Both the position numbers and the translations under genes were made by a program. A DNA stretch of 64,000 bases. It comes from Takakia lepidozioides (Eukaryota > Plantae > Bryophyta). The stretch's first letter is position 1. Every line of letters starts with the position of its first letter. The stretch lies in assembly GCA_030704615.1 (NCBI GenBank), contig CM060731.1, forward strand, positions 63,364,001 through 63,428,000, in the 5' to 3' direction. This document shows, in pieces, positions 2,480 through 63,840 of this stretch. The notes beneath the pieces were generated by a model. It did no database searches and was not told the DNA's origin. It was given only the letters and a program-made list of their open reading frames with translations.

Positions 2480-3950
2480 TTTTTGTGCAATTTAAACTGT
2501 CACCACCCACCCACTCCAAATCTCTGTAAGCCCTTTGCCAATAAGTTGTCCAATCATTAATCCTCTTCATGTACTCATAAATATAAAAGGTGTCCTCCAA
2601 CTGGCCTATAGAAAACATTGCCTAATGTATCTCTTGTGCAAATGAGACACACTTGTAGTTCCCAAATTCTGTTAGGTACAAAAATTTGCAAGTGCCCACG
2701 AATAATAGTATTAATCATTCTGGAGGCACAATGATTAGTTGGTTGAGGACAAGGTCGGACAAACCAAAAATGGTGGTGTTACTATTCAGATGGGGTACAA
2801 GCAAAAAGAGGCAAATTACCAAGACTCATGTTCGTATGTATGGTGAACCCACTCAATCAATCCTATGTAATCTCACCAGGGTACATCACAGAAGGTCACT
2901 CTAGGTCACTCTACTCACAAAAGCTATGCCCAATTCCGGGGTGCCACACCCGGACTTCCCAACCACCGCACCATGCATCTCTATACAGATTTCATACTCA
3001 TTCAGCTTTACTCAACACTTGTACACCATCGTTTCTACTCCAACCATCTTGCCAGTCCACCCCACCGTCAAATCCCTAGCCTTGGGCCATCTTCATGCTC
3101 ACGAGCTTGCTTCACTTAACCTGCAACTGTCAGTTCGGCGATATTCTAGCAGTCTCTCTCGTCACTCCAAACTGGTTGGCAGGTCGAGCTTCGTTCCTGG
3201 CACCTAACAAGGGGCTCAAGAGATATGATGTTTATAGATGGCCTGCTTGGGCCCACAGAGGGAGAGCCATCGGTTTCGGCCAATAGGCTTGAAAAAACAT
3301 GGCCCATTTACCTAAGCCATGGACATACTCTCTCCATTGGCAAGTGGACCGTTGATCTTTCTCCATCCCTTTGGCAGTATGTACTCCCACGGATAATGGA
3401 GAGTGGCTGCGAGCTCAATCTCGGAGCATCCCTTAGGTGGCACCATGGAGTCATGGAGGGTAGTAATCACAAACGGGTTTGAAGAAAATGCTGGCAGGGG
3501 TCCCCTTGAACAAGTTGACTGGCCAGCAATGTCGTTTCCAGGAGAGCGTTGGCTACAACACTCTACAAGCATAAAACAAGTATTACAATTAAAATATCCA
3601 TCACCTTAAATTGTCTATTTCCCTGCTCTGTATAAATCGGGCTTAGAGTATATAGTCCCAAGTGTATGGCAAACAAAATCTGATGACCCTCTATTACCCC
3701 CTTAGATCTCTAGGGTTTAAAGGTCAGCAGATGTAAAGGGTGATTCAAGCATTTGGTAAATAGGCACATTAGCAATGAGATGATCAAAAGGGCGTACCAA
3801 ATACCAACCTGGGAAATCACATCTTCTAGATGTGCAATGCTGATCCCGCAATATCCTTGAAGAACTTGTTTGGAGGCCATATCTATCCAATTAATGTATG
3901 ATGAACATGTCAAATCTCCGCACACAAACCTTCCAACCTTCCAGTTGATC
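2480..3950 (-). mobile_element. highly degraded LINE remnant (tentative)
   Basis: Broken minus-strand frames with Trp-rich, H-x-F...C-P like segments resembling the L1 ORF2 3' region; no intact ORF. Confidence 0.3.
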
Positions 3951-4139: not shown

Positions 4140-4670
4140 AGAGCATATAGGACTAAAACGCATAACATGTCGACAAGAGAATTTTCCAACTTCATCCCTG
4201 GTGCAATTCCAGTCTTCTCAATTTCGGCATGGACCTCTTTGCCCTTTTCCAGGGCTCCTAGGGTGGCAGAAGCATTCAGGATGAATGTGACCTAGTTGGG
4301 TATCACCCCTTCCAGTATCATTTGCTCATAGATCTCCATAGCCTCCCTACCATACCCATGTTGAGCATATCCCGTGATCATGGCGTTCCAAGATATTGTC
4401 AAACACCTTGCGCGCTTCCTTAACACTTTTACATTTAGCATACATCACAGTAAGGGCAGTCTCCATAATGATATCTGACCCAATTCTAGCTTTGATGATG
4501 TCAGCATGTACCTCTTAATACTTTCCTGTTGCCACATTGGTAACATTTCAAAATCCCCACCATACCATAGATCCACCAACGAGCTAACTTGCAGAATTCA
4601 ACATGAAAATTTAGGGACGACACTGATAAGAGGGGAAAACAGGCTGAAATGTGTTGAAGAAGGTACTTCA
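4140..4670 (-). pseudogene. PLS-PPR pseudogene fragment joined to an intron/acceptor paralogous to the PDF-motif locus at 58.2 kb
   Basis: Minus strand encodes broken VHADIIKA / MYAKC / ARKVFD / [12 protein letters not shown] motifs; 4515-4670 aligns with 58165-58330. Confidence 0.75.
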
Positions 4671-15008: not shown

Positions 15009-15412
15009 TGCTTTTGGGCTGATTAGCACACCCCTTGGGACACTTATTTGTATTATCAAGAACCGTCGCGTGTGGGGGGACTTCCACTTCACAACCAAGT
15101 TTATCTCAAAGATTGTTGGGCGAGCAGTTGTTGTAAGGGATGCCAGCTGCTTTCACCATTTTCAAGGTGGGGGAGCAGCAAAAGGAATTTTCTCTTTGCC
15201 TCCACAGTGAGAAGCTGGCCATTGGTTTTGGGCTAATAAGCATAACACCTGGGACGCCTCTCCATCTCATCAAGAATCTTCGGGTGTGTGGTGACTGCCA
15301 TGCCTCCACCAAATTCATCTAAAAGATTGTTGACCGAGCAATTGTTGTACGGGACACTAACCGCTTTCACCATTTCGAAGATGGGGTTTGTTCTTGTGGG
15401 GATTACTGGTGA
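15009..15412 (+). pseudogene. two tandem DYW-domain fragments without PPR array
   Basis: 15009-15165: AFGLISTP...[19 protein letters not shown] (frameshifted); 15166-15412: [11 protein letters not shown]...CGDCH..TKFI*KIV...CSCGDYW with an in-frame TAA at 15320. Confidence 0.85.
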
Positions 15413-41187: not shown

Positions 41188-41377
41188 ATGGGAGAGCCAA
41201 TAATCGAGTCCCTACATTCTGTATGCTGTGAAGGGGCGGAAAGACTTACATCATGCAACGGATTAGTGGGCCAAACTGTGGAGGTCAAATGCGTATCCAG
41301 CTTGGCAAATTCTGGCGCCAAAGTTTTGGCAGTGATGGATATGATGCCTCACCAGCTTGCAGGGATGCAGGAGAAAG
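41188..41377 (+). CDS. putative first exon of PDF-PPR-DYW gene 1 (reading frame unresolved)
   Basis: Homologous to 46743-46965 upstream of gene 2; both end in AG|GTAT donors. Confidence 0.4.
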
Positions 41378-42252
41378 GTATAGGCATGTAGCTAGACATG
41401 GAAATTCACTAAACCGAATGTGCTATTTTCGCCTTTTTTATAACGACATCAGACCGCCTAACGTAGGCACCATCAAACTGTCTCTACCCAGAGTAGGAAG
41501 AGCATTAGTGTCTCCTTAAAGGTGAGTCCTTTCGTATAAGCTCATAGATCCATCAAACCACTCAGAGCGGAAACAAGAGTAGTATGTGTACACAATCAAC
41601 ACATGTAAGGTTCTTCATATTGCCATACCAAGCAGCCCTTCAAAGTATGTAAGGAGTCTGGGGTCTTGGTTGAAGTCATAGTTCAGCAGTAAGGTGTCAG
41701 CTGTTGCCTGCTCCTCTTTCATGTCCAGGCTTTCTAACCTTATAGGCCTGCTGCTTTAGGTCAAGATCCAAACTAAACCCTAGTGAGTCATCCCCTTATC
41801 CTCCGTTCTAGAAAAAACTATCTGAACGGAATAAAGGGATCTGGCAATTCTCGAGTGTTGTTAGCCACATTCAAGAAAAGAAAGAGAAAAAGAGGGAGAG
41901 AGGTAAAAATCCTCAAGCCTTTCATTTTGAGGTTTCCTAATTCTGAGACAAGGCATTGGCTACAGTAGATCAGCCAAGAGAGCAATGTACATCAACTGGA
42001 TCATGTAGAAGGTGTACACATATACCCTAGTGTGTTGCTGCTACAGGGCCTAGTACAAGATATCATGGTTGGCCATCAAATGTCTACCAGCAGAAATGTA
42101 CGAGCAACTCACAAAACAGTTTCTCAATCACCACGACAGGATTAAGTAATCCAAGAATAGTCCTAGCCATGTATTCAAGGATAGAAAGGGAGAGAAAGTA
42201 TGAAGGATAAGACAAATCTTGAGTGTTGTTACAAAGAACACAGCCACATTCA

Positions 42253-42255
<3 letters not shown>

Positions 42256-42324
<69 letters not shown>
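42256..42324 (+). repeat. (GA)~34 microsatellite
   Basis: Pure dinucleotide run. Confidence 0.98.
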
Positions 42325-42326
<2 letters not shown>

Positions 42327-42468
42327 AACTTGGAAAACCAAACTAGCATTGCTCAGTAAGACCTAGATCATTAGGAGCTGCTTATATTTAATATCTAGCA
42401 CTCATCAAGTGAGATGAGACAATGAAAAACAGGCAAAGTTTTCATGTTCTTGCAACACTTGCACACAG

Positions 42469-45400
42469 GCCAAGCAATGGGCATAGGACGGCTCTGGCAG
42501 CAATTCTTCTCAGACCCTTCACAGTGGTGGGACAACAGGTTCCACAAGGTGAGGCTATCTTCATTTAGGATGTGAAGAGATGTTATGATGGTTTGTGACT
42601 GAAGCTGGCATGATGTAGTTTGGTTGGATTGCATCTTCAGTTGCTCAGATTATGAAGTAAATATCTGCATGTTCTCACTATATTATTTGTCCTGCCTTTC
42701 AAGCCTTGGGTGTGTCTAGTGAAAAATCTCAATGTTGGTATAAAGAAAGTTGTTCTTCCTTGTTGGCAGGACATGAAGCAGGATAATCAAGTTTATTCCC
42801 TCTTATATGAAAGATGCTTTGGTGGCTTTAGCCGGGTCTATGCGAGGCTGTGGTTGAAGCTGTGCCTGCTCAGCTGCCCACTGGTGGTTTTCACAGAGAA
42901 GTCCAAGCTCACCGGACTTCAGACATAAGCGCACAAAGGAGGCCCTTTGGATGGAGAGTTGGTCAAACCCTCCCTGGGTGAAAGCAGAGCTGGCTGCCAT
43001 GGTACAACGTCAAGCACAATGTGGTGATGTGAGGACACTATGTAAGGCAGGGAGACTGAAAGAGGCCCTGTGTATTTTAAACCAAGTAGACACTTTTGCA
43101 GACTCCAATACATATGCTTGTCTCTTGCAGGTTTGCATCAACAGGCAAGGCCTAGCAGAGGGAAAGCAGGTGCATGCTCACATCATCCAAAGTGGGTTCA
43201 AGCCAAACATCTTTCTACTCAACACCCTTGTAAACATGTATGCAAAGTGCGGGAGTGTGGTGGCTGCACGCCAAGTGTTTGATGAAATGCCTGAACATGA
43301 TATGGTTACGTGGAATATAATGATAGCAGGATATGCAAAGCATGGATGTGGTAGGGATGCCATTGGGATCTATGAGCAAATGATACAGGAAGGGGTGTTA
43401 CCCGACAGGGTCACATTTATTTGTGTTCTCAAAGCATGTGCTAGTCAGGCAGCCCTGGAAAAGGGCATAACGGTCCACTCTGATATGCTCAAATCTGGAA
43501 TTGAGATAGACATCACTCTAGAGAATACCCTTGTCGACATGTATGCCAAATGTGGGAGCTTAAGGATATCGCGTCAGGTGTTCGACAATATGGCTAAGCG
43601 AGATGTGGTGTCATGGAATGCAATGGTCACAGGATATGTTCTGAATGGTTGTGAGAGGGAGGCTTTCGAGATGTATGAGCAAATGATCCAGGAAGAAGTG
43701 ACACCCAATGAGGTCACTTTCATTTGCCTTCTCAAGGTGTGTGCCAGTGTGGCAGCCCTGACTAAGGGCATAAAGGTTCACGCTGCCATCATCAAAGCTG
43801 GAATTACACCAGATATCATTTTGGAAAGTACCCTTGTTGACATGTATGCAAAATGCGGGAGCATAACTGATGCGCGTCGAGTGTTTGACACAATGGCTAG
43901 ACGAGACGTAGTGTCTTGGAATGTGATGATAGCAGGATATGGTCAGCATGGATGCACTAGGGAGAGCCTCGAACTATTTGAAGAAATGCAACAGGAAGGC
44001 TTGAAGCCGACTGTGGCCTCATGGAACGCGATGATCACAGGATACGCCCAGCATGGAGCTGGTAGGGATGCTTTGGAGATGTATGGGAAAATGATACAAG
44101 AAGGGGTGACGCCTGACAGTGTCACATACATTTCTGTCCTCAATGCATGTGCCAGCCTGGCAGCACTGGAGGAGGGAAAAGTGGTCCATGCTGACATTAT
44201 CAAAGCTGGAATTGCACGGGATGTCATACTGGATACTGCCCTTGCTGACATGTATGCTAAATGCGGGAGCATGAAGGATGCACGCCAAGTGTTTGACAAT
44301 ATGGGTCAACGAAATGTGGTCTCATGGAACGCAATGATTGCAGGATATTTTCAACATGGGTGTGCTAGGGACGCCCCGCAACTATTGAAACAAATGCAAC
44401 AGGAAGGCCTGAAGCCGGATGTGGTCTCATGGAATGCCATGATCGCAGGATATGCTCAGCATGGGTGTGAAGGGGAGGCTTTGGCAACATATGGGCAAAT
44501 GATCGGGGAGGGGGTGGCACCGGACAAGGTCACATTTATTTGCATTCTCAATGCGTGTGCCAGCCTGGCAGCCCTGGAGAAGGGCCGAGAGGTCCATGCT
44601 GACGTCATCAGATGTGGAGTTGTGGCGGATGTCATTCTGGAGACTGCCCTTGCTGATATGTATGCCAAATGCGGGAGCATGAAGGATGCACGTCAAGTGT
44701 TTGACAATATGAGACAACAAAATGTGGTCACATGGAGTGCGATGATTGCTGGGTATGCTCGGCATGGGGGTGGTAGGGAGGCCCTCCAACTATTTGAACA
44801 AATGCAACAGGGAGGCTTGAAGCCAAATGGTATCACCTTTATATGTGTCCTCTCTGCATGTAGCCATATGGGTCTAGTGAATGAAGGGTATTACTACTTT
44901 AATTCCATGATCCAAGATCATGGCCTTACCCCTACAGTGGAGCATTTTGGCTGCATGGTAGACCTTCTTGGTCGTGCAGGGCGGTTGGAGGAGGCGGAGG
45001 AATTCATTAACGAAATGTCAATTGAACCAGATACTTCAGTGTGGGGGGCCTTACTTGGTGCATGCAGAATTCATGGCAATGTGGCGGTAGCTGAACGTGC
45101 AACAAAATGCCTTCTCAAGTTGGATCCAGGGCAAGCTGCAACATATGTACTACTATCGAACATCTATGCCGCTGCTGGCAGGTGGTATGACACAGCAAAG
45201 GTGAGAAAAATGATGGAGGTCAGAGGTGTCAGAAAGGTGCCGGGGCACAGCTGCATTGATGTGAAAAAACAGGTCCATACATTCGTTGTAGATGACAAAA
45301 TGCACCCACAAATTGAGGAAATTCATGCTGAGCTGAAGAGATTGTCTGGGCCACTGAAGAAAGCTGGGTATGTGCCTGACACTCGCTTCATATTGCATGA

Positions 45401-45647
45401 TGTGGAGGAGGATCAAAAAGGGTTTTGTCTTTGCTACCACAGTGAGAAGCTGGCCATTGCCTTTGGGCTGATCAGCACACCCCCTGGGACAACTCTCCGC
45501 ATCATCAAGAACCTTCGGATGTGTGGTGACTGCCACACGGCCACCAAGTTCATCACAATGGTTGTTGGGCGAGCAGTCGTTGTTCGGGATGCCAACCGCT
45601 TTCACCACTTCCAAGATGGGGGTTGTTCCTGCGGAGATTACTGGTGA
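42469..45647 (+). CDS. PLS-class PPR-E-DYW RNA editing factor with N-terminal OSB-type PDF motif; exons 42469-42548 and 42897-45647 (plus a probable upstream exon)
   Basis: 898-aa ORF of P-L-S repeats, E domain, PG box [31 protein letters not shown]; upstream GT-AG exons give LWQQFFSDPSQWWDNRFHK|RSPSSPDFRHKRTKEALW in frame. Confidence 0.93.
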
Positions 45648-46742
45648 AACAAAGCAACATGCATAAAAAACTTTGCCTCAAACCTGGCCTGGGGAGAGAG
45701 GTGATAATATTGCTTCTGTGACCCCCCAGTGAAGTCAGTGAATACCTTTTTGGAGAGGTTGTCAGCAAGGTACACAATGTATGGTTAGCAGGGGCATTCT
45801 CCTCTTGGTGTCAAAATGGCGGGGCTTCCAACCCAGCTTTACCATCATCTACTCTATAACACGAAACAACACTCTTGATTCATCAAGAAAACCCCAGCAA
45901 GTCCAGCAATGTTTCATCCTAATCTACACCAAATCACCAAATCATTATTTGGAGCTTTTAGCTCCCTATAACCCACATGTGACTTAACCTACTTCATCCT
46001 GTGGCGCTTCAAGGAGTTGTTGTTTGTGTCCAAATTCTAACAACCCTATCTCTAGAGGCCGATCATGTTTTCCATCCCTCAGACAGTGTGTGATACTCTC
46101 CCCCTTAGTCAAAAGTTTAAAGCTACATGGATAAAGAGGGCCTTGTCTTGAACCATAGATATTCCTCTCAAATATTTATGAGTACAATCCTTGTCGAACA
46201 AGATGTAGAACAAGCAAAGATCCATCCTGAGGCACCAACCTCTGCATGGGACTGACTGCTGAGACTCCACGAAAGAGTTGAGAGTGATATCTTCTTTGAA
46301 TAAGCTCAAGTTGTTCACTAGCCTATGTCTCGCGCCATTATCATTCCAGCCTCTCAGCCTGAAAATGGAGTTTTTCATCATATATAGTCAAAAGGTGAAG
46401 TAGCTTCTTCTCTGTCTTCTTACTTGTACAAAAGATTGATGTGGTGTCCCACCTTTTAGTAGGGACTCAGTAGACACCATAAACAGATTACATACCAAAG
46501 GCATTCAGAAGGAAACATGAGGGCAAGTAGTGGAAATCTATCATAAAGTTTCCCTCTTGGGGTGCTTGTGCAGCACATAGTGAAGGAAACATGGCAGCCT
46601 TGAGAGGGAACTTTGTGAGCCGTGAGGCAAACAGACAAGAGCCCCAACCCCAAGGCAGACGATCGTCCCACAGGCATAGTTGGATGAATATGAGAAACGA
46701 AAAAATCAAGTCTATTGAGTCGAGGAGGAGCGAGGGAGAGCG

Positions 46743-46965
46743 ATGGCAGCGAGCTCGGCCGCCTCGGTGCAGGCGCAGGGAGGGGCCATGCCCACGGTCT
46801 TGTCTTCTCTTTGCACTCAAGGGGATGGAAGCAGCACGTCATGCAGCAGAGGAGCTGGGCAGGCTGTGGAGGGAGCATCGACATCCACCTTGGCAATGCC
46901 TTGTCCCAAACCTCTGAGAGAGGTGGCTATGACTCCTCCCCAGTCTCCAGGGGTAGCCAAGAGAG
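46743..46965 (+). CDS. putative first exon of PDF-PPR-DYW gene 2 (reading frame unresolved)
   Basis: Homologous to 41188-41377; donor AG|GTATGG; the frame from ATG 46743 is phase-compatible with the exon at 47694. Confidence 0.4.
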
Positions 46966-47693
46966 GTATGGGCGGGAAAATTCGCTCCTTTTTCATTGTT
47001 TTTCCTCTTTCAGGTCTGTAAACTACTTGTGTAGGAGTGATCCAAGCTTCATACTGCCTTGACCCATCTTGCATATTCCGCAACCCGCTTGATCGCAAAT
47101 GTTCATACGTAAGTTTTACCGCACCGTTGTCCTTCATCCATGTTCTCCTTCACTGTCTGCTGATTTCGGAATTTTTGGATGTGCTTATCTTTTTTCTCTT
47201 CATTGTATCCGTGTTCGAAGAATTGCTTGCACTGCAAGTATCAAGAGGTGCAAGCATTTTATACCACTTCTTCATGTAGAAGGCAATCATGATGTGAAGG
47301 AAACAATTGCCAGTCATACTGAGGGATGGATCTCTCATTGACAATTCCCTGGGAATGTTGGCTATGACAGGGCATAGTCCCGGAGCCCAGTTGTGGGGCC
47401 ACCAATATATGGAACTCGGTCCGCAAACGCCATAGTGCTCGTCCACAGCTATCGACAATCTGGTTGCCGGGAATTATGTATTGATTTAAGGACTGGTATT
47501 GACATCGCGCTAGGAAAGTTTTGTGCTGATTAATGCCTTGAGAGAGGGAGTGTGAAATACGGACATCTATCGAAAGCCTACACTAGCCTTCCTCAACGAG
47601 ACCTAAGTCAATTAGAAGCTGTTAAAGGCCCATGTTCAGCAGTAGGGATCTTAATAAAGACCGATGCAAATTTTGTGTATTTCCTGCATGCAG

Positions 47694-50638
47694 GACAAAT
47701 AAACAGTAAAGAACGACTCTGGCTGGAGTTCTTCTCAGATCCGTCACAGTTGTGGGACAACAGGTTTGATAAGGTGAGGCCACCTTCATTTTTTTGGGAG
47801 GGATGTGGCTTAAGCTGCCATGATGGTGTTGTCTGGAGATGTTTTGCGGACTGGATTGTATCTCCAGCCCCTTCAATTGTTTCCAATTTTTTTCGTGGTT
47901 GGGAAAAAGCGGCAGAAGCATTCTTTTCTGTTGCCATCATTAATTTGTTCATTGTTCCTCCTGTTACTTGAAAGATGCTTCGATTCTGGTGGTCGTAGCG
48001 GTCTATGTGAGGTTCTGGTGGAAACCACGCCTGCTCATCTGCCCACTTCTGGTTTTCACAGAGAAGTCCAACATCGCCAGACTTCCGATGTAAGTGCACA
48101 AATGAAGCCCTTTGGATTGGTTGCCGCTGGAACCCTTCCTGGCTGAAAGCAGTGCTAGCTGCCAGGACACAAGGTGGAGAAAAATTGGATAAAATAGTCA
48201 GCGAGTCTTCAAGCACTTGTGGGCATGTGAGGACACTATGTAAGACAGGACGATTGAAAGAGGCGCTGCACATTTTGCACAAACAGGGGATTTCTGCGGA
48301 CTCCCATACGTATGTCTGTCTGTTACAGGAGTGTATGAAAATTAATAACCTTGAGATGGGTAACCAGGTGCATGTCCACATTAGACATTTTGGATTCAGA
48401 CCTGCCATTATTGTACTCAACACCCTTGTCAACATGTATGCCAAATGCGGCAGCGTGGTGTCTGCACGCCAAGTGTTTGACAAAATGCCTGAACGAGATG
48501 TCTTTACATGGACCATAATGATAGCAGGATACGTGAAGCATGGATGTGGTGGGGAGGCTCTTGACATGTATCAGCAAATGATACAGGAAGGTGTCAAACC
48601 CAACAATGTCACATTCATCAGTGTTATCAAGGCATGTGCCAGCCTAGGAGCCCTGGAAAAGGGCAAGAGGGTCCATTCTGACATCATGAAAGCTGGCATT
48701 GTGTCGTGTATCAATTTGGAGAATACCCTTGTTCACATGTATGCCAAGTGTGGGAGTGTGAGGGATGCACGTCAAGTGTTTGACAGTATGGCTAAACGAG
48801 ATGTGATCTCATGGAATGCAATGATCACAGGATATGCTCAACATGGGTGTGGTATGGAGGCTTTGATGATTTATGACCAAATGACATGGGGAGGGGTGAC
48901 ACCCAACATTGTCACGTTCATTTGCATTCTCAATGCATGTGGCAGCATTGTTGCCCTCCAAAAGGGGAAAGAGATCCATACAGATATCATCAAAGCTCGA
49001 ATTACACCAGATAAAATTCTAGAAACTGCCCTTGCTGTCATGTATGCCAAATGTGGAAACATGAAGGATGCGCGTGAAGTGTTTGAGAATATGGCTGAAT
49101 GCGATGTGGTCTCATGGAGTGCTATGATTGCAGGGTATGCTGAACTTGGGTGCAGTATGGAGGCTTTTGAGATGTATGACCAAATGATACAGAAAGGGGT
49201 GATGCCTGACAAGGTCACGTTCATTTGTGTTCTCAATGCGTGTGCCAACTTGGCAGCCTTGGAAAAGGGCAAGGAGATCCATGCTGAGATAATCAAAGCT
49301 GGAATTGCCCCATATATCAATTTGGGGAATGCTATTATTCACATGTATGCTAAATGTGGGAACATGAATGATGCGCGTCAAGTGTTTGACAGTATGGCTG
49401 AACGAGATGTGGTCTCATGGAATGCAATGATTGGAGGCTATGCTCAGCATGGTGGGTTTGGTATGGAGGCTTTAGAGATGTATGAAGGAATGATCCGGGA
49501 AGGAGTGACCCCCAACAAGGTCACATTCATTTGCATTCTCTCTGCATGTGCCAGCCTTGCAGCCCTGAAAAAGGGCAAAGAGGTCCATGCTGACATCATT
49601 AAAGCTGGTATCGAGCCAGATATTAATTTGGAGAATACCCTTGTGAGCACGTATGCCAAATGTGGGAGTGTAAAGGATGCGAATCAAGTGTTTGACTGTA
49701 TGGTTGAACAGGATGTGGTCTCATGGAATGCCATGATTGCAGGATATGGTCAGCATGGATGTGGTAGGGAGGCCCTTCAACTTTTTGAACAGATGCAACA
49801 GGAAGGCTTGGAGCCAGATAGTGTCACCTTCATCTGTCTTCTCTCTGCATGTAGCCATGTGGGTCTAGTGGATGAAGGCCATCACTACTTTGATTCAATG
49901 AGTCAAGATCATGGGGTCACTCCTACGGCAGAGCATTTTTGCTGCATGGTGGACCTTCTTGGCCGTGCAGGACTATTGGACGAGGCAGAGGATGTAATTA
50001 ACAAAATGCCAATCAAACCAGATGCGGCGGTGTGGGGAGCCTTGCTTGGTGCCTGCAGGATCCATGAGAATGTTGAGGTAGGAGAACGTGTGGCAAAATG
50101 CCTTCGTGAGTGGGATCCACATGATGCTGCATCTTATGTGCTGCTATCAAACATCTATGCTGCTGTTGGCAGGTGGGATGATACAGCGAAGTTGAGGAAA
50201 ATGATGCAGGACGAAGGTGTCAGAAAGGAGCCAGGGCAAAGCTGTATTGAGGTGGACAGCCAGGTGCACACATTTGTTGGAGAGGATGAATTGCATCCAC
50301 AAATTGAGGATATCCATGCTGAACTGAAGAAATTGTCTTGGCAGATGAAGGAGGCTGGGTATGTGCCTGACACACATTTTGTCTTGGGTGATGTGGAGGA
50401 GGAACAAAAGGGTTTTTTCCTTTGCCACAACAGTGAGAAGCTGGCCATTGCTTTTGGACTGATCAGCACACCCCCTGGGACTTGTATCCGTGTCATGAAA
50501 AATGTTCGGGTGTGTTGTGACTGCCACAGCACCACAAAGTTCATCTCAAAGATAGTTGGCCGGGTTATTGTTGTACGGGATGCCAACCGCTTTCACCACT
50601 TCCAAGACGGGCTTTGTTCTTGTGGGGATTACTGGTGA
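47694..50638 (+). CDS. PLS-class PPR-E-DYW protein with N-terminal PDF motif and HxE->NxE deaminase variant; exons 47694-47773 and 48062-50638
   Basis: 828-aa ORF of P-L-S repeats, [33 protein letters not shown]; upstream exons [19 protein letters not shown]|[18 protein letters not shown]. Confidence 0.93.
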
Positions 50639-57789: not shown

Positions 57790-58885
57790 AAAACTTCACA
57801 CTGGAGAGCTGACTGGTGATTCTTGTAGCTATTGATCCACAGGGAATCAGAAGTAATCTTGTGTTTGAAATCCGGCCCTCTTGGATGAATCTGGACCTCT
57901 ATCCCTGGTCCTTCAGCTATCCCTGCCTGTGTAAAAATCATGAATACAACCTCAGCCTTGCTGCTAGCAGTTGACACTGACGGCGTAAAGTTCTTCCAGC
58001 AAACACCCCAACCCTACTTATTACAGTAGTTCTAATTCTGAATTGCATCTGCTTCTCTCTGTAGTCCAACAGGCATTCACCTTTTTGTCTCCATTGTCCC
58101 ACCATTGACTGGGGTCGGAGAAGTGTTCATTCCAAAGCTTCTCCTCATCTCTGTTATCTGTTTTTGGATACTTTCCTGCTGCCACACATCGGCAGTAACT
58201 TGTCAAAGTCACTCCAAACCACCACAGATCTACCCAACGAGCTAACTTACAGAATTCAATATGCATCTCAGGGCCGAGTCTGATGAGAGGGAAAAACAGG
58301 CAGAAATAGGTTGAAGAAGAAGGTTCCCTCACCACATTGTCCTTGACCTTGTGTCATGACCCATGCAGGATTTAACCGAGTCTGATGAGAGGGAAAAACA
58401 GGCAGAAATAGTTTGAAGAAGAAGGTTCCCTCACCACATTGTCCTTGACCTTGTGTCATGACCCATGCAGGATTTAACCGGATCCACCCAATGAACTAAC
58501 TTACAGAATTCAATATGCATCTCAGGGCCGAGTCTGATGAGAGGGCAAAACAGGCAGAAATAGGTTCAAGAAGGTGCCTCACCACATTGTCCTTGACCTT
58601 GTGTCATGACCCATGCAGGATTAAACCGACCATCAACCCAGAAGGACCTCTTGTGTGTGCTGCTTGTGTCTGTAGTCAGGTAATGTCGGATTGGTCTGTG
58701 AGAACCACCGCGGTGCAGCTGAGCAGGCAGAGATTGAAACACAGTCTGCTAAGACCAAGCTGACTCTCCCAAGAACCTTGTAAACATCAGGAACAATACC
58801 AAATGATGGTACTTCTTCACATCGTACATTAAGAAAAAGCCACACCTTTTTGTCCCACCATCGTGTCCACACAACCATGAACTCT
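57790..58885 (-). pseudogene. third PDF-motif locus (gene fragment or short gene), no PPR array seen downstream
   Basis: Spliced exons ...EEKLWNEHFSDPSQWWDNGDKK| (~58175-58081) and IHPRGPDFKHKITSDSLWINS (from ~57890); same intron position as in the two PPR genes. Confidence 0.65.
58227..58625 (+). repeat. near-identical ~102-150-bp tandem triplication in an intron
   Basis: ccgagtctgatgagagg...gacccatgcaggatt at 58274, 58376 and ~58528. Confidence 0.9.
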
Positions 58886-58964: not shown

Positions 58965-61553
58965 TCATTCTCGTAGGCAACCACAAGAGAGGCCTAAAAA
59001 ACCATCCATAACACGGTTCAGTGCAGTGGATGCAAATGCTTCTTTCCTATCAAGCAGAGCTGCCATTGCCAATTGGGGGTCATCAAACACGCTGTAAATA
59101 CGCTCATAGAATTCGGCTTGTGAAGTCTCTGATATCGTCGCATCAATTTCTTCAAACTTTCGGGTCAAAATTTCTGAAGCCACTGGAGAAAGCCCATTTA
59201 ATATTAAAGCTTCAAATGTTCGAGGAAAGTCTGTCACCATAACAAGCAGTAGGCGGTGCAGAGCTAAAGGGTCCAGAGAGGAGAAGATCTGGGCTATCAA
59301 GTCCTCTTTCCCCACTGCCTCCTTGCCTTCTGCCCCTAAGGAAACATCCACATCACTGGGATTGTGGCCCGGGGGATCTTGTGTCGAATTTTCATTCATA
59401 ACTTGAGCAGTCCCCAAAGGTTTGGATCTATCTGCTGTGCTCTCTGTGACAGCGGAGACACAAAGGACCAGAGTCCTGAGGTACTCTATCTCTGAAGCTG
59501 TCAGTGTCTCCATCGTCATCCTTCTCTGATTCCCAGTTGTCTCAAATGAACCAGAACACTGATCTGAACAATCAAGGGGCAAGCTGTTCAGACAATTGGT
59601 CTCGTGGACAGCATTCAAACAAACTACTGCTGATTGTGTTCCAACACTAGCGACCTGGCTGTCTTCATCCCTAATCACATCCTCTGCTTTTAAGCTATTC
59701 GAACCTTTTCCTTTCCGTCGTCCCTTCCTTTTCGATCTTACAACAGTCCCAGACACCTGGCCATCCAAAATCTTCTTGCACGTCTTAACAGTCCTTGTAC
59801 CAGAAGCAGCCCTCTCCATTATGGGAAAACTTGGAGAACCTCCTGGCCTTTGAAGCCTACTCATATCACTGCCTTCAGCATCACTGCCTTCCCGATCATT
59901 CATACATCTAGCCTTCACCTTGTAGTCATTACAAAGAGCAGCTGTTGGATTACGACAAAGATCCTTCTTACCCCTGTCCCCACATTGTTCGAGGACCAGA
60001 TTTTCCACTTTCCAGACGCTAGTCCCCTCGGTTTTGTCTGGCGGTCTTGCAGCTCCAGCTTTCCACTCCCTGTCCGATGCGACGCCTGCAGAGGTTGATA
60101 CCTCGTCGATCATCTTCTCCTTCTCGGAATCCACAAGGTTGACAAGCACGCGGCGCAATAAGTAGGCGTCCATGTGGGTGCCCAGTTTTGACGAGAGATT
60201 GGACACCCACCACAGGTTGACTGCCATCGTCACTCCCTCACTGTCTACTTGGTGATACCAGCCTTCAGGCATGAACAAAGCATCGCCAGCATCGACTGTT
60301 ACCGACCGGCAATGCCGCGAGGCACCTTCGAAGCGGGGATACTTCCCGAGCTCAGGTTGCACGAAATCCACAGCACTGTGATTAGAGGCTTCCCCATATA
60401 TAGGCATAGGGTAGAGAAAGGGTGCAGCTGATGGTGGCCACAGAGTCACTTGCTTGCGCCCCGCAACCACACACAGAAGGTTATGGTAGGGGTCATAGTG
60501 GGTGCTCGACCGAGAGCCATTCACACTCATCCATAGATTTATGTTCGAAACAGTAGTCCCCAAAAATCTTGGAACTGATACATCCCGCATCAGCACTTCT
60601 AAAGGAGGCTTTGCTTTGCTATCCTGGGTAAATATCCCAACCTGTGCGAGATAAAGCTGGAATTCAAGGGAACCTTCACCAACAGCAACTGGGCTGCTTA
60701 CCTCTGGCTCTCTCATCTCCGTACTCGTCCTTCCCACTCCCACATTCACGTCCGAGCATTCGAGGTTCCTCAGCCCTTTCAATCCCTCACAATCCTCCTG
60801 CAAATCCGAAACATGATTCCTGCCCAATGTCAAGCTTTTTGCTGCAAGATCCACAAATGCACCAAATGAGATCGGTACTCGCTCATGCCCTCGAATGTCA
60901 CCATAAAAATTCGAGCCTGATTTGGTGGCCATCACCTGCACCTTCTCTAACCCCGCCACATCCTTGAGATACTGCAGGCCACCCTTGCCTGGATCCCACA
61001 ACTCGCATGCAGGCCACTCCTTGACTGCCCCCACCAGCAGAACAGGCACGTTCCGATCTTCAAATTGTGAAGCAAACTCCGCTGCTGAGGGAATGTCTCC
61101 CACACAATCTACTACTGCCAATCCATCCATCTCCATCTTCTCCATCTTCTCCATCTTCCAAACCAGACTCTCAGATTCTCTAGTCTCTACACAAGAATCT
61201 GACAAGAACCCATCGTGTCGCGGGTGTCGGGCGGCTAAAGTGGCCCGGAAGAGGGCCGGGTCGGTTCGCTCGTGTGTACGAGCAACAAACAAACAACTCT
61301 CTTCTAGAACTGGGTCAGTCGAGATGCAGTGTTGTTGTGTAGAGATTGTTGTAGAGCACCATCTCATGAAGACATCAGCAATGCAGTCAGTGCATTGCTG
61401 TGTGTAGGGATTTTGTGTCCAGATGGAAGCGACGAAAGGAGGAGGAGGAGATCTTAGGGGAAGATCACAGAAACTATCCCTCATGTAGTCTGTTGCTAAA
61501 GCACCCGGGAAAAATGGCAACGTCTCATGGCAGATTTCAAGGGCATGTCGCAT
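58965..61553 (-). CDS. JmjC (cupin_8) domain 2-oxoglutarate/Fe(II) oxygenase, JMJ31-like, intronless; true start may be downstream (e.g. ATG 61154)
   Basis: 862-aa ORF; LYLAQ, NLWM...STHYDPYHNLLCVVAGRKQVTLWPP, GDALFMPEGWYHQVDS (HxD...H facial triad). Confidence 0.9.
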   Translation of the reverse strand: MRHALEICHETLPFFPGALATDYMRDSFCDLPLRSPPPPFVASIWTQNPYTQQCTDCIADVFMRWCSTTISTQQHCISTDPVLEESCLFVARTHERTDPALFRATLAARHPRHDGFLSDSCVETRESESLVWKMEKMEKMEMDGLAVVDCVGDIPSAAEFASQFEDRNVPVLLVGAVKEWPACELWDPGKGGLQYLKDVAGLEKVQVMATKSGSNFYGDIRGHERVPISFGAFVDLAAKSLTLGRNHVSDLQEDCEGLKGLRNLECSDVNVGVGRTSTEMREPEVSSPVAVGEGSLEFQLYLAQVGIFTQDSKAKPPLEVLMRDVSVPRFLGTTVSNINLWMSVNGSRSSTHYDPYHNLLCVVAGRKQVTLWPPSAAPFLYPMPIYGEASNHSAVDFVQPELGKYPRFEGASRHCRSVTVDAGDALFMPEGWYHQVDSEGVTMAVNLWWVSNLSSKLGTHMDAYLLRRVLVNLVDSEKEKMIDEVSTSAGVASDREWKAGAARPPDKTEGTSVWKVENLVLEQCGDRGKKDLCRNPTAALCNDYKVKARCMNDREGSDAEGSDMSRLQRPGGSPSFPIMERAASGTRTVKTCKKILDGQVSGTVVRSKRKGRRKGKGSNSLKAEDVIRDEDSQVASVGTQSAVVCLNAVHETNCLNSLPLDCSDQCSGSFETTGNQRRMTMETLTASEIEYLRTLVLCVSAVTESTADRSKPLGTAQVMNENSTQDPPGHNPSDVDVSLGAEGKEAVGKEDLIAQIFSSLDPLALHRLLLVMVTDFPRTFEALILNGLSPVASEILTRKFEEIDATISETSQAEFYERIYSVFDDPQLAMAALLDRKEAFASTALNRVMDGFLGLSCGCLRE

Positions 61554-63840
61554 CGGGGGCTAACATCAGAAGCATCTACTGGCATGGAAATCAAAGCTTC
61601 TCCTCAACTCCACTGCTTTCTAGGGTATTTATTTTTTCAAGCATCCGGCGGTGTCAAGTTCGTGGTAGTTCATGTAATCCGGTAGCCAGCTTGAGTGGGG
61701 CTGGTAGCAGTTGTGCCTGTTCAAGGAATTTTCCTTCGAGGAGAGAGAAGCCGGTAAGTTCGCGTGAGAAATGGAACGGTCTGGAGACTATGTACTGCGA
61801 GAATGGGAAGAACTTGAGCAAGGTGGTAGCTTCAGCTGCATTTACTTCTACAGAGGTGGGAGCAGATGAGGACGGTGCTTCTACATCCCTTCCACCTCCT
61901 GAGGCTTGGGAGGAGCCAGACTCTAGATCAATGCTGGCGGGGTGGAGGCCACCTCGGTATGTCTGGAGAGCCATTGCATCAGTAATTATTGCAGGCCAGG
62001 TAATCTGATGTTCTTATCAATGTGTCAGTCTTGAACTTCGTCTTCTAGCAAATACATCCATGCAGCCTGAACAATGAACTGAAGCGGTTTGAGATTGTGG
62101 TGATGTGTGACGTGAAAAGTGGGACTGTGGTCACGCTGAAATGCTCCTTGTTGTTTCTGGCAGGTAGTGATTAGAGTACTAAGAGGTAGAGTCCATGTGC
62201 GGAACTTGATGCAACAACTTGACAGCGTTGGGCTGGGCTCTCTCGGTGTCAGTCTCCTAACAGCTTCTTTTGTTGGAATGGTGTTCACAATTCAGGTATG
62301 CTAGCTTCCTCTTTTGGTCTTGTTCATTTCATTGAAGACATAGAGCTTGTAGAAGTTGGTAGATCATGCTTGTTGTTTTGTTGAATCGTTGAAATAGCTT
62401 GGACAGACCTGAAAGGGGGTCCTACAGAGGACAAAGTCACGAGTGGTATCAGGGAAGTTTGAGCAAGATGAGCGTATTGCACAGCTGTTGTTAGTAATGG
62501 AGAGCTGTGCCATGCATTTCGAGAGTGGTAGACTGCAAGTGGATTGCAGGAGGTATGTCAGCGTTGTATGGGAAGTATATGGTCATGAAAATAACCAAAA
62601 GGGAAATTTAATTACTTGCCAAACCTTCCCAATACTAGTTAACCTTCAAGCAATTCTACATGACCTCAGAGAGGAATGGCTGAAATTGAATATTTTTGCA
62701 TGCAGTTTGTTAGGGAATTTGCAAGGCTTGGACTCACAAGATCTGTGGGGGGTGTACTGGCCCTGGCTTTGGCAAGGGAGCTCTCTCCGGTAGTCACTGC
62801 CATTATCTTGGCTGGCCGAGTTGGCAGTGCATTTGCTGCTGAGCTTGGGACCATGCAGGTACTTTGTCCTTGTTTCACCTCCTCCCAAAGATACTGTTGA
62901 TACTGGTGATGTTGTTGACACTGATCTCTTCACCTAAACAGAAATTCTTTTACCCGCACGCATGAAGTTGCTTAGTAGTTTGTCTTTGTGGATCTTAGAA
63001 ACGTTGTTCAGAGTCTTCAACACTAGAAAAACCTCTGTCTCTCTCTCTCTCTCTCCTCTGCTCAGACAACAAGGTAAGCCACCCTCGTTGCATCTGAATG
63101 CTGGGATAGTACATTTCCCTGCCTTTCCTTTGTCTGTCGGGTTAACACTCCACATCCAGCTTCATGAGGACAGGATTCTGGGAGGAATGAGCCCTGAAGG
63201 TTACATCATAGACTGCAGCCACATTTACAGCATTACTTGTTGTCCTGTTCCTACTACATGGCCAGAAGGCATGAAATTCATAGCCCCAATCCCAAGTTGG
63301 TGAATCACGTGATGATCCGTAGGTGTACTGGCTTGTACCTTAAAGCTTATGGCATTGTGGGAGGGCAAATTAATGTTGCTGGTTGTTGGGAGCACGTGCC
63401 AGGTGTCAGAGCAAACGGATACATTGCGAGTCCTCAGAACAGATCCAGTGGATTATCTTGTAACCCCACGGGTAATTGCTTGCTGTATAGCACTTCCCAT
63501 CTTGACCATCATTTGTTTCACAGTAGGCATGGCTGCAAGCGTGCTGCTTGCAGATTCGGTGTATAATGTGAGCTCCAACATCATCCTTGAGTCAGCAGCA
63601 AGGGCATTGCAGCCGTGGGATCTCATCAGCACCATGATCAAGGCCACAGTCTTTGGGGGCATCATTTCCATTATTAGCTGTGCATGGGGAGTCACCACCA
63701 ATGGTGGGGCCAAGGGGGTTGGTGAATCAACCACATCTGCAGTTGTGATTTCTCTGGTTTGCATCTTCATTGCTGATTTCATTATGTCCTGGCTCTTCTT
63801 CCAAGGTGCTGGGGATGCTTTGAAGGCTGCCATGGGATAA
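61514..63840 (+). CDS. TGD1: TRIGALACTOSYLDIACYLGLYCEROL 1, chloroplast MlaE-type ABC permease; exons 61514-61999, 62164-62295, 62706-62858, 63403-63840
   Basis: All introns GT-AG, phase 0; transit-peptide-like N-terminus; [17 protein letters not shown]|[34 protein letters not shown]|[38 protein letters not shown]. Confidence 0.96.

Follow-up and report, generated by a model that had tools for sequence, protein, structure and literature searches.

PPR-DYW proteins are the RNA-editing enzymes of plant organelles and are in development as programmable RNA base editors. In seed-free plants, large families of them accompany heavy RNA editing. The orientation of PPR tracts on nucleic acid is parallel, 5'-3' along the protein, and these tracts can read single-stranded DNA (ssDNA) as well as RNA (PMC13041630). 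Organellar OSB proteins carry the PDF motif, which in AtOSB1 is sufficient for ssDNA binding (PMC6963530). Here we analysed a stretch of 64,000 nucleotides from Takakia lepidozioides (contig CM060731.1, positions 63,364,001 to 63,428,000; hereafter the window), in which two neighbouring genes on the + strand, gene 1 (41188-45647) and gene 2 (46743-50638), appear to join these two elements. On sequence evidence, gene 1 and gene 2 are tandem three-exon nuclear genes for organelle PLS-class PPR-E-DYW editing factors. We consider it probable that the mature proteins begin with one PDF module of ~55 residues, a module that elsewhere lies at the C-terminus of OSB proteins.

Three-exon structure of the two tandem genes

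The model of gene 1 has three exons: one with the start, one of 80 nt, and a large one encoding the PLS-PPR array with E and DYW domains. The first-pass annotation had proposed that an 80-nt exon and an acceptor at 42897 splice in frame directly before the PLS array, and this matched the sequence to the base. Exon 2 (42469-42548, +) consists of 2 nt followed by 26 codons and encodes the first half of the PDF module (..RLWQQFFSDPSQWWDNRFHK) between a pyrimidine-rich acceptor (cacacag/gcc) and the donor aag/gtgagg. Exon 3 (42897-45647, +; acceptor ttttcacag/aga) opens with the second half of the module (42897-43001, +; RSPSSPDFRHKRTKEALWMESWSNPPWVKAELAAM), identified by translation and by a PDF profile hidden Markov model (HMM), and continues as an unbroken frame of 916 codons through the PLS-PPR array, E, E+ and DYW to the stop. 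Exon 2 closes on a full codon, so that RLWQQFFSDPSQWWDNRFHK joins RSPSSPDFRHKRTKEALWMESWSNPPWVKAELAAM in frame, and the first PPR helix begins ~8 residues after the module. In either gene, exon 2 supplies the start of one complete module and the first 35 codons of exon 3 supply the rest.

Exon 2 opens on the last two bases of a codon, which calls for an exon before it that ends in phase 1. Such start exons were located for both genes, which adds to the earlier annotation. The inferred exon 1 of gene 1 (41188-41377, +) comprises an ATG, 63 codons and 1 nt before the donor aaag/gtatagg, and exon 1 of gene 2 (46743-46965, +) an ATG, 74 codons and 1 nt before the donor gagag/gtatggg, where contigs from two runs splice out a GT..AG intron. 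Both end in phase 1, fitting the 2+78-nt exon 2, and both genes are in frame across the three exons, with 190+80 nt (gene 1) and 223+80 nt (gene 2) preceding exon 3. The similarity between the two start exons is weak but significant (tblastn E 1e-5; 65% DNA identity over 169 nt). The exon 1 peptide of gene 2 is transit-peptide-like, with Ser, Thr or Ala at 30 of its 74 residues. Intron 1 of gene 1 contains a (GA)n microsatellite of ~70 nt (42221-42330), a short flank of which is duplicated 370 nt upstream (41837-41902; 70% over 78 nt).

Domains were assigned by searching the exons singly, each by its own coordinates. Pfam matched gene 1 to PPR_2 (2.8e-113), E_motif (~45072-45257, +; 5.5e-20), Eplus_motif (~45273-45344, +; 2.7e-5) and DYW_deaminase (45366-45644, +; 9e-42, over positions 1-93 of 93). 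Its deaminase signatures are complete: PGHS, HSEK (His codon at 45438), CGDCH and the terminal DYW. That gene 2 has an 80-nt exon and the same intron position had also been claimed, and was borne out. Its exon 2 (47694-47773, +; 80 nt) encodes the first half of the module, as judged by sequence and HMM, and its exon 3 (48062-50638, +) encodes the second half, a PPR array, an E motif and a DYW domain (PPR_2 9.3e-98, E_motif 3.9e-20, DYW_deaminase 7e-41). The Eplus_motif of gene 1 was not listed for gene 2 in the Pfam search. Matches to PPR, PPR_1 and PPR_3 were strong in both genes as well.

The expectation that annotation by open reading frame (ORF) alone misses this N-terminus was confirmed. 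The first Met of exon 3 in gene 1 (42951) lies inside the module, and exon 3 of gene 2 has no Met until residue 92; both genes therefore need upstream exons. Several PPR models in the databases start in the middle of the module with only its second half present, as expected if annotation skipped the small exon. An exact look-up of the ORF-only protein in a public protein collection returned no entry, so the genome has no annotation in that collection.

Gene 2 lies 2.4 kb downstream of gene 1 on the same strand and is its paralogue (61% protein and 78.5% DNA identity). The introns of the pair are ~75% identical, close to the value for the coding exon, suggesting that the pair is a moderately old tandem duplicate. 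The 3' end of the PDF intron (76-82% between the genes) was considered as a specially conserved element and rejected, as the whole intron and the coding exon are alike. The DYW domain of gene 2 has its full length, yet Asn (AAC at 50429) stands in place of the zinc-ligand His of HxE, giving CHNSEK against CYHSEK in gene 1; the HxE expected of the PLS-PPR-DYW family is thus present in gene 1 and absent from gene 2. Within the module of gene 2, the WW pair has become LW and PDFKHK has become PDFRCK. In assembled transcripts, exon 1 of gene 2 is joined to an alternative acceptor (47370/47371) 323 nt upstream of the 80-nt exon; the retained stretch (47371-47693, +) brings in an in-frame TAG at 47433-47435. 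The His-to-Asn change, the module changes and the premature-stop transcripts together make it probable that gene 2 is a copy in decay or without catalytic activity. Gene 1 has all catalytic signatures and matching contigs that indicate transcription, and looks functional.

Homology to OSB proteins and distribution of the module

Since the PDF module is not among the Pfam models, a profile HMM was built from 23 modules of database proteins, mostly PPR-borne (mean column identity 66%), and was run on the stop-to-stop pieces of a six-frame translation of the window. Exon 2 of gene 1 matched profile positions 5-26 (43 bits, E 4e-12) and the start of its exon 3 matched up to position 60 (48 bits, E 9e-14). 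For gene 2, the corresponding pieces matched positions 3-28 (34 bits) and 24-59 (32 bits). The predicted exon pieces thus match complementary parts of the profile, far beyond chance, and the only other real matches in the window belong to a decayed third copy on the minus strand. Together, the frames, the Pfam domains and the profile matches uphold the PDF-PPR-DYW architecture put forward by the first-pass annotation.

The motif had been named as the PDF of organellar OSB proteins, and significant matches to proteins with an SSB domain support that identification. The PDF region of a PPR-DYW protein from the liverwort Calypogeia matched a 286-residue protein of Juncus effusus (E 7.7e-20, 66% identity) that has the OSB architecture (Pfam SSB, residues 78-171; PDF, residues 197-256); the same query also retrieved PPR proteins of Sphagnum, Calypogeia and Adiantum. 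Against 1.84 billion representative proteins, the profile found 1299 matches at E<=1e-3 and 597 at E<=1e-10. The best 150 of these comprised 68 proteins with an SSB-like domain, 11 PPR proteins and 71 fragments or proteins with 5-11 tandem modules, and SSB-domain proteins reached E 1e-149. At the level of sequence, homology between the PPR-borne module and the OSB PDF module is established. The SSB-like OB-fold (Pfam PF00436) had no match in exon 1 or exon 3 of either gene, and the predicted products of gene 1 and gene 2 are not OSB members; they share the module only. When the first 60 residues of exon 3 served as query in a word search, nothing was found; this blank is not evidence of absence, since the half-module is too short and has R for K in PDFRHK. 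The representatives also include poly-PDF proteins with 7-13 tandem modules (P0134-P0139; P0134 has 13 in 1160 residues), in some of which the SSB-like domain is weak or was not detected; the OSB literature searched describes a PDF copy number of 'up to five' only.

The distribution of the module was counted among the 120 best database relatives of exon 3, of which 31 have a PDF N-terminal to the PPR array. In the clubmoss Diphasiastrum it was found in 26 of the 35 proteins, at 1-3 copies each; it was also present in a Calypogeia protein and in two moss-like proteins from the Joint Genome Institute (JGI), and clipped module ends were seen in one Ceratopteris and one Adiantum model. None of the Cryptomeria or Ginkgo PPR proteins among these 120 has it. 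The module starts at residue ~70-80 in the window genes and at 27-90 in moss and liverwort proteins. In a 931-nt JGI contig, a Sphagnum-like PDF-PPR N-terminus runs without interruption, as in a spliced mRNA. The PDF-PPR-DYW combination is old and common in seed-free plants.

Splice sites were read from the genomic loci of the Juncus OSB gene and of Calypogeia and Sphagnum PPR genes. In the Calypogeia and Sphagnum PPR-DYW genes, the first exon ends in phase 1 and is followed by an 80-nt exon, with phases 1 and 0, as in the window genes. The 80-nt exon opens (G)Q.. and ends ..R-x-x-K/gt, and the large exon opens x-N-P-R-Y-P-D-F. The Juncus OSB gene has an exon of 83 nt with the same two phases, which ends WWDNRNSK/gt before a next exon that starts KNPNYPDFKHK, so that the shared break is WWDNRxxK / xxPxxPDFKHK. 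The 80-nt exon, with both intron positions and their phases, recurs in liverwort and Sphagnum PPR-DYW genes and is deeply conserved. Finding one codon boundary and one set of phases in an angiosperm OSB gene as well as in PPR genes of the bryophytes and of the window favours exon shuffling at the DNA level, and the comparison points to this as the way in which the module was gained. The same split-exon layout across these genes also speaks for a great age of the PPR form, and the predicted gene structures show that the three-exon PPR form is no younger than the last ancestor shared by liverworts, mosses and vascular plants. In a tree of 326 PDF modules (60 usable columns), most forks were unresolved; the PPR label changed 13 times, with one change forced by well-supported branches. 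A single origin of the PPR-borne modules is neither shown nor excluded by this poorly resolved tree.

The last 12-16 bases of the intron inside the module hold TTCTGGT or CTGGTGGT just 5' of the AG (window 42880-42896 and 48045-48061; Calypogeia locus L002 ~3664-3675; Sphagnum locus L004 ~2197-2208). These intron ends read in frame as ..FW.. or ..WW.., and the PDF profile aligns HWWFSQ at the end of the gene 1 intron to the WWDNR positions. The element may be chance, a splice signal or a coding relic.

Transcripts, proposed function and alternatives

Two public runs were mapped on 42101-48100; they are stored as contigs rather than reads, and their RNA nature is only guessed. Contigs matched gene 1 exactly at 43660-43946, 43981-44102 and 45054-45335, all in exon 3, and at 45666-45842, past the stop in the 3' untranslated region. 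Gene 1 is transcribed, to the extent that these runs, guessed to be RNA, are RNA. In one contig the match stops at 47773 and resumes at 42909, and the twelve foreign letters between resemble the first 12 bases of exon 3. This suggests a paralogue mRNA spliced exactly from donor to acceptor. Summed contig depth was 853 and 415 over the PDF exons compared to 37 and 12 in the adjacent introns, suggesting that many expressed paralogues share the exon. In both runs, a GT..AG intron of gene 2 was spliced from 46965 to 47371 (X1 record 7 and X2 record 13; a join at 46963/47369 is equivalent). Past this splice, X1 record 7 is continuous as far as 47715 and X2 record 13 as far as 47496; a further contig, X2 record 14, spans 47577-47750. 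A contig joint from 42540 to 42830, with one side of 22 nt and 6 foreign letters, was attributed to a paralogue or a misplaced contig and rejected as a splice form.

AlphaFold2, run with an alignment of the 23 modules, predicted a compact PDF fold (predicted local distance difference test score, pLDDT, 88) with helices at 4-13 and 52-59 and three short strands at the WWD, FKH and ALW triplets. Foldseek of this model against the PDB gave no match at E<=0.001, and a wide fold search with VIA found no solved relative (best Z 2.7); the missing relative of the predicted fold says nothing on its function.

In editing factors of this type, the PPR array would recognise RNA on the 5' side of the target C, which the DYW domain would deaminate. 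The N-terminal repeats would lie on the 5' nucleotides, because PPR tracts bind RNA in parallel; with the module ending ~8 residues before the first PPR helix, its predicted place is the footprint's 5' edge. From this arrangement, we favour the view that, where the PPR footprint has its 5' end, the module adds a hold on single-stranded nucleic acid that is independent of sequence. Two forms of such a hold can be envisaged. The module could grip the RNA just upstream, raising affinity and keeping the RNA unfolded, or it could grip the exposed ssDNA of a transcribing nucleoid, which would position the editor beside the nascent RNA.

Several observations weigh against this reading. Recombinant OSB1 and OSB2 prefer ssDNA over double-stranded DNA or RNA (PMC4166229), which weakens the version with an extra grip on RNA. 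The exon 1 peptide of gene 1 is acidic (7 D/E compared to 4 K/R), atypical for an organelle presequence, and is without read support, making the true N-terminus and its targeting the least certain part of the model. The first-pass annotation had pointed to RNA junctions as a check. The paralogue contig was spliced exactly at the predicted sites, and the junction of gene 1 itself (42548/42897) was not bridged by any contig among the rows listed, which come from assembled contigs rather than reads of runs only guessed to be RNA. Purifying selection, named there as well, was strong on one part of the module. By Nei-Gojobori estimates between gene 1 and gene 2, the motif part of exon 2 had an omega of ~0.08 and the module's second half one of 0.42 (few sites in each), compared to 0.30 for exon 3 and 0.25 for E/DYW; the second half is thus not below the rest of the protein.

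The foremost alternative, put forward by the first-pass annotation, is that the module tethers the editor to the nucleoid: binding of ssDNA in transcription bubbles or replication intermediates would concentrate the protein there and allow co-transcriptional editing. The published biochemistry of PDF is of ssDNA binding only, in preference to RNA and dsDNA (PMC6963530, PMC4166229), and since the PPR-borne module is 66% identical to the Juncus OSB PDF, this ligand preference may have been kept. However, a module ~8 residues from the first PPR helix suits a hold on the same RNA strand equally well. We regard the tether as possible, though clearly less so than the general hold on single-stranded nucleic acid, of which it is a sub-case rather than a true opposite.

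It is also conceivable, though unlikely, that the PDF exons of both window genes are no longer translated and form a 5' leader or pseudo-exons, the proteins starting within exon 3. The gene 2 contigs that use the acceptor 323 nt upstream and run into the stop at 47433 would fit this, as would the W-to-L and K-to-C changes in the gene 2 module, its NSE in place of HSE, the acidic and unsupported exon 1 of gene 1 and the in-frame Met at 42951. However, that Met lies inside the folded module, and exon 3 of gene 2 offers none before residue 92. In both genes the three exons keep their frames and phases, the motif part of exon 2 is strongly constrained (omega ~0.08), the paralogue contig is spliced exactly at these sites, and liverwort and moss genes are annotated with the same three-exon structure.

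A role in protein-protein docking or import, for example within a long presequence that is cleaved or used solely in targeting and does not bind nucleic acid, would suit a module that lies near the N-terminus in the window, moss and liverwort proteins. It is very improbable: the module is predicted to be a compact folded unit, and its C-terminal position in OSB proteins is incompatible with a presequence. In Diphasiastrum its start is often at residue 135-190 and it occurs in 2-3 tandem copies, and its conservation is far better than that of transit peptides. That the module brings the DYW deaminase to single-stranded organellar DNA is hardly credible, as its sole point of support is that one protein combines a cytidine deaminase with an ssDNA-binding module, and full PLS arrays with E motifs are typical of site-specific RNA editors.

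Returning to the preferred hold at the 5' edge of the footprint, a broader and more tentative proposal is that the PDF module is a built-in helper of the editing factors of seed-free plants, which by holding either the 5' edge or the nucleoid would make a PPR-DYW protein self-sufficient. Its apparent absence from the sampled seed-plant PPR proteins would fit trans-acting helpers having taken over. MORF/RIP proteins are reported from seed plants only.

Neighbouring features and comparison with known systems

The window contains remnants of further genes of this kind. A decayed third PDF unit (57819-58146, -) has its intron at the same place (..KLWNEHFSDPSQWWDNGDKK / ..PRGPDFKHKITSDSLWIN; HMM 31 and 27 bits), and no PPR similarity was found downstream of it. 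Next to it, a frameshifted fragment of a PDF second half together with a copy of the intron 3' end (58328-58756, -) was detected by tblastn and weak HMM matches, the intron 3' end by blastn at 58756-58696. Within this fragment, the tail piece NPAWVMTQGQGQCGE followed by gtgagg occurs in three copies ~100 nt apart. The whole region (57819-58756, -) is probably a remnant of a two-PDF PPR gene, as read from its sequence pieces. It sits just downstream of a Cupin_8/JmjC ORF (58965-61553, -) of 862 uninterrupted codons (Pfam 3.8e-51), whose protein had no entry by exact look-up in a public collection. Isolated DYW fragments, accompanied by a short PPR fragment, lie at 15010-15409 (+) and 4163-4547 (-), one of them ending in GDYW and a stop at ~15409, just before a large transposon; these are defunct remains of other PPR-DYW genes. 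At 63349-63840 (+), an ORF fragment encoding a Permease MlaE domain (Pfam 2e-43) is probably an exon of a TGD1-like gene for chloroplast lipid transport.

A PPR-borne PDF module is not described in the literature that we searched, which included a review of moss PPR proteins and a 2026 review of PPR structures, the founding OSB paper lying outside the search; a 2026 paper on OSB evolution makes no mention of PPR. The three-exon models, the intron positions and phases in common with an OSB gene, and the gene 2 defects are new at this locus. An additional module for binding nucleic acid, conserved across hundreds of natural editors, would supply a missing part of the account of how they find or hold their substrates. 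It would offer a way to ask whether editing and transcription are coupled at the nucleoid, and would widen the use of PDF beyond genome maintenance. ORF-based annotation cuts the genes inside the module, and family surveys have probably missed it as a result. If the module is indeed a built-in helper, adding or removing it should tune editing efficiency and could improve engineered PPR editors.

The closest described systems share parts of this arrangement. Like the PLS-class PPR-E1-E2-DYW factors, such as PPR56 and PPR65 of Physcomitrium, the predicted gene 1 product has a PLS array, E, E+ and a DYW domain with PG box, HxE, CxxCH and terminal DYW, and the genes are likewise nuclear, belong to a very large family and have a large, nearly intron-free coding exon. 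Unlike these factors, the window genes add a folded PDF module, which follows the presequence and precedes the first PPR. With OSB proteins they share the module itself, its exon break and phases, and the multiplication of modules in tandem, which is seen in both families. In contrast to OSB proteins, the window proteins are without an SSB-like OB-fold, have the module at the N-terminus rather than the C-terminus, and are otherwise RNA-editing enzymes. Maize PPR4 also combines a sequence-specific PPR tract with an N-terminal single-strand-binding module (PMC9459714). In PPR4 that module is an RRM, on a P-class protein that functions in splicing, whereas the window genes are predicted to pair a PDF module with a PLS-DYW protein that functions in editing.

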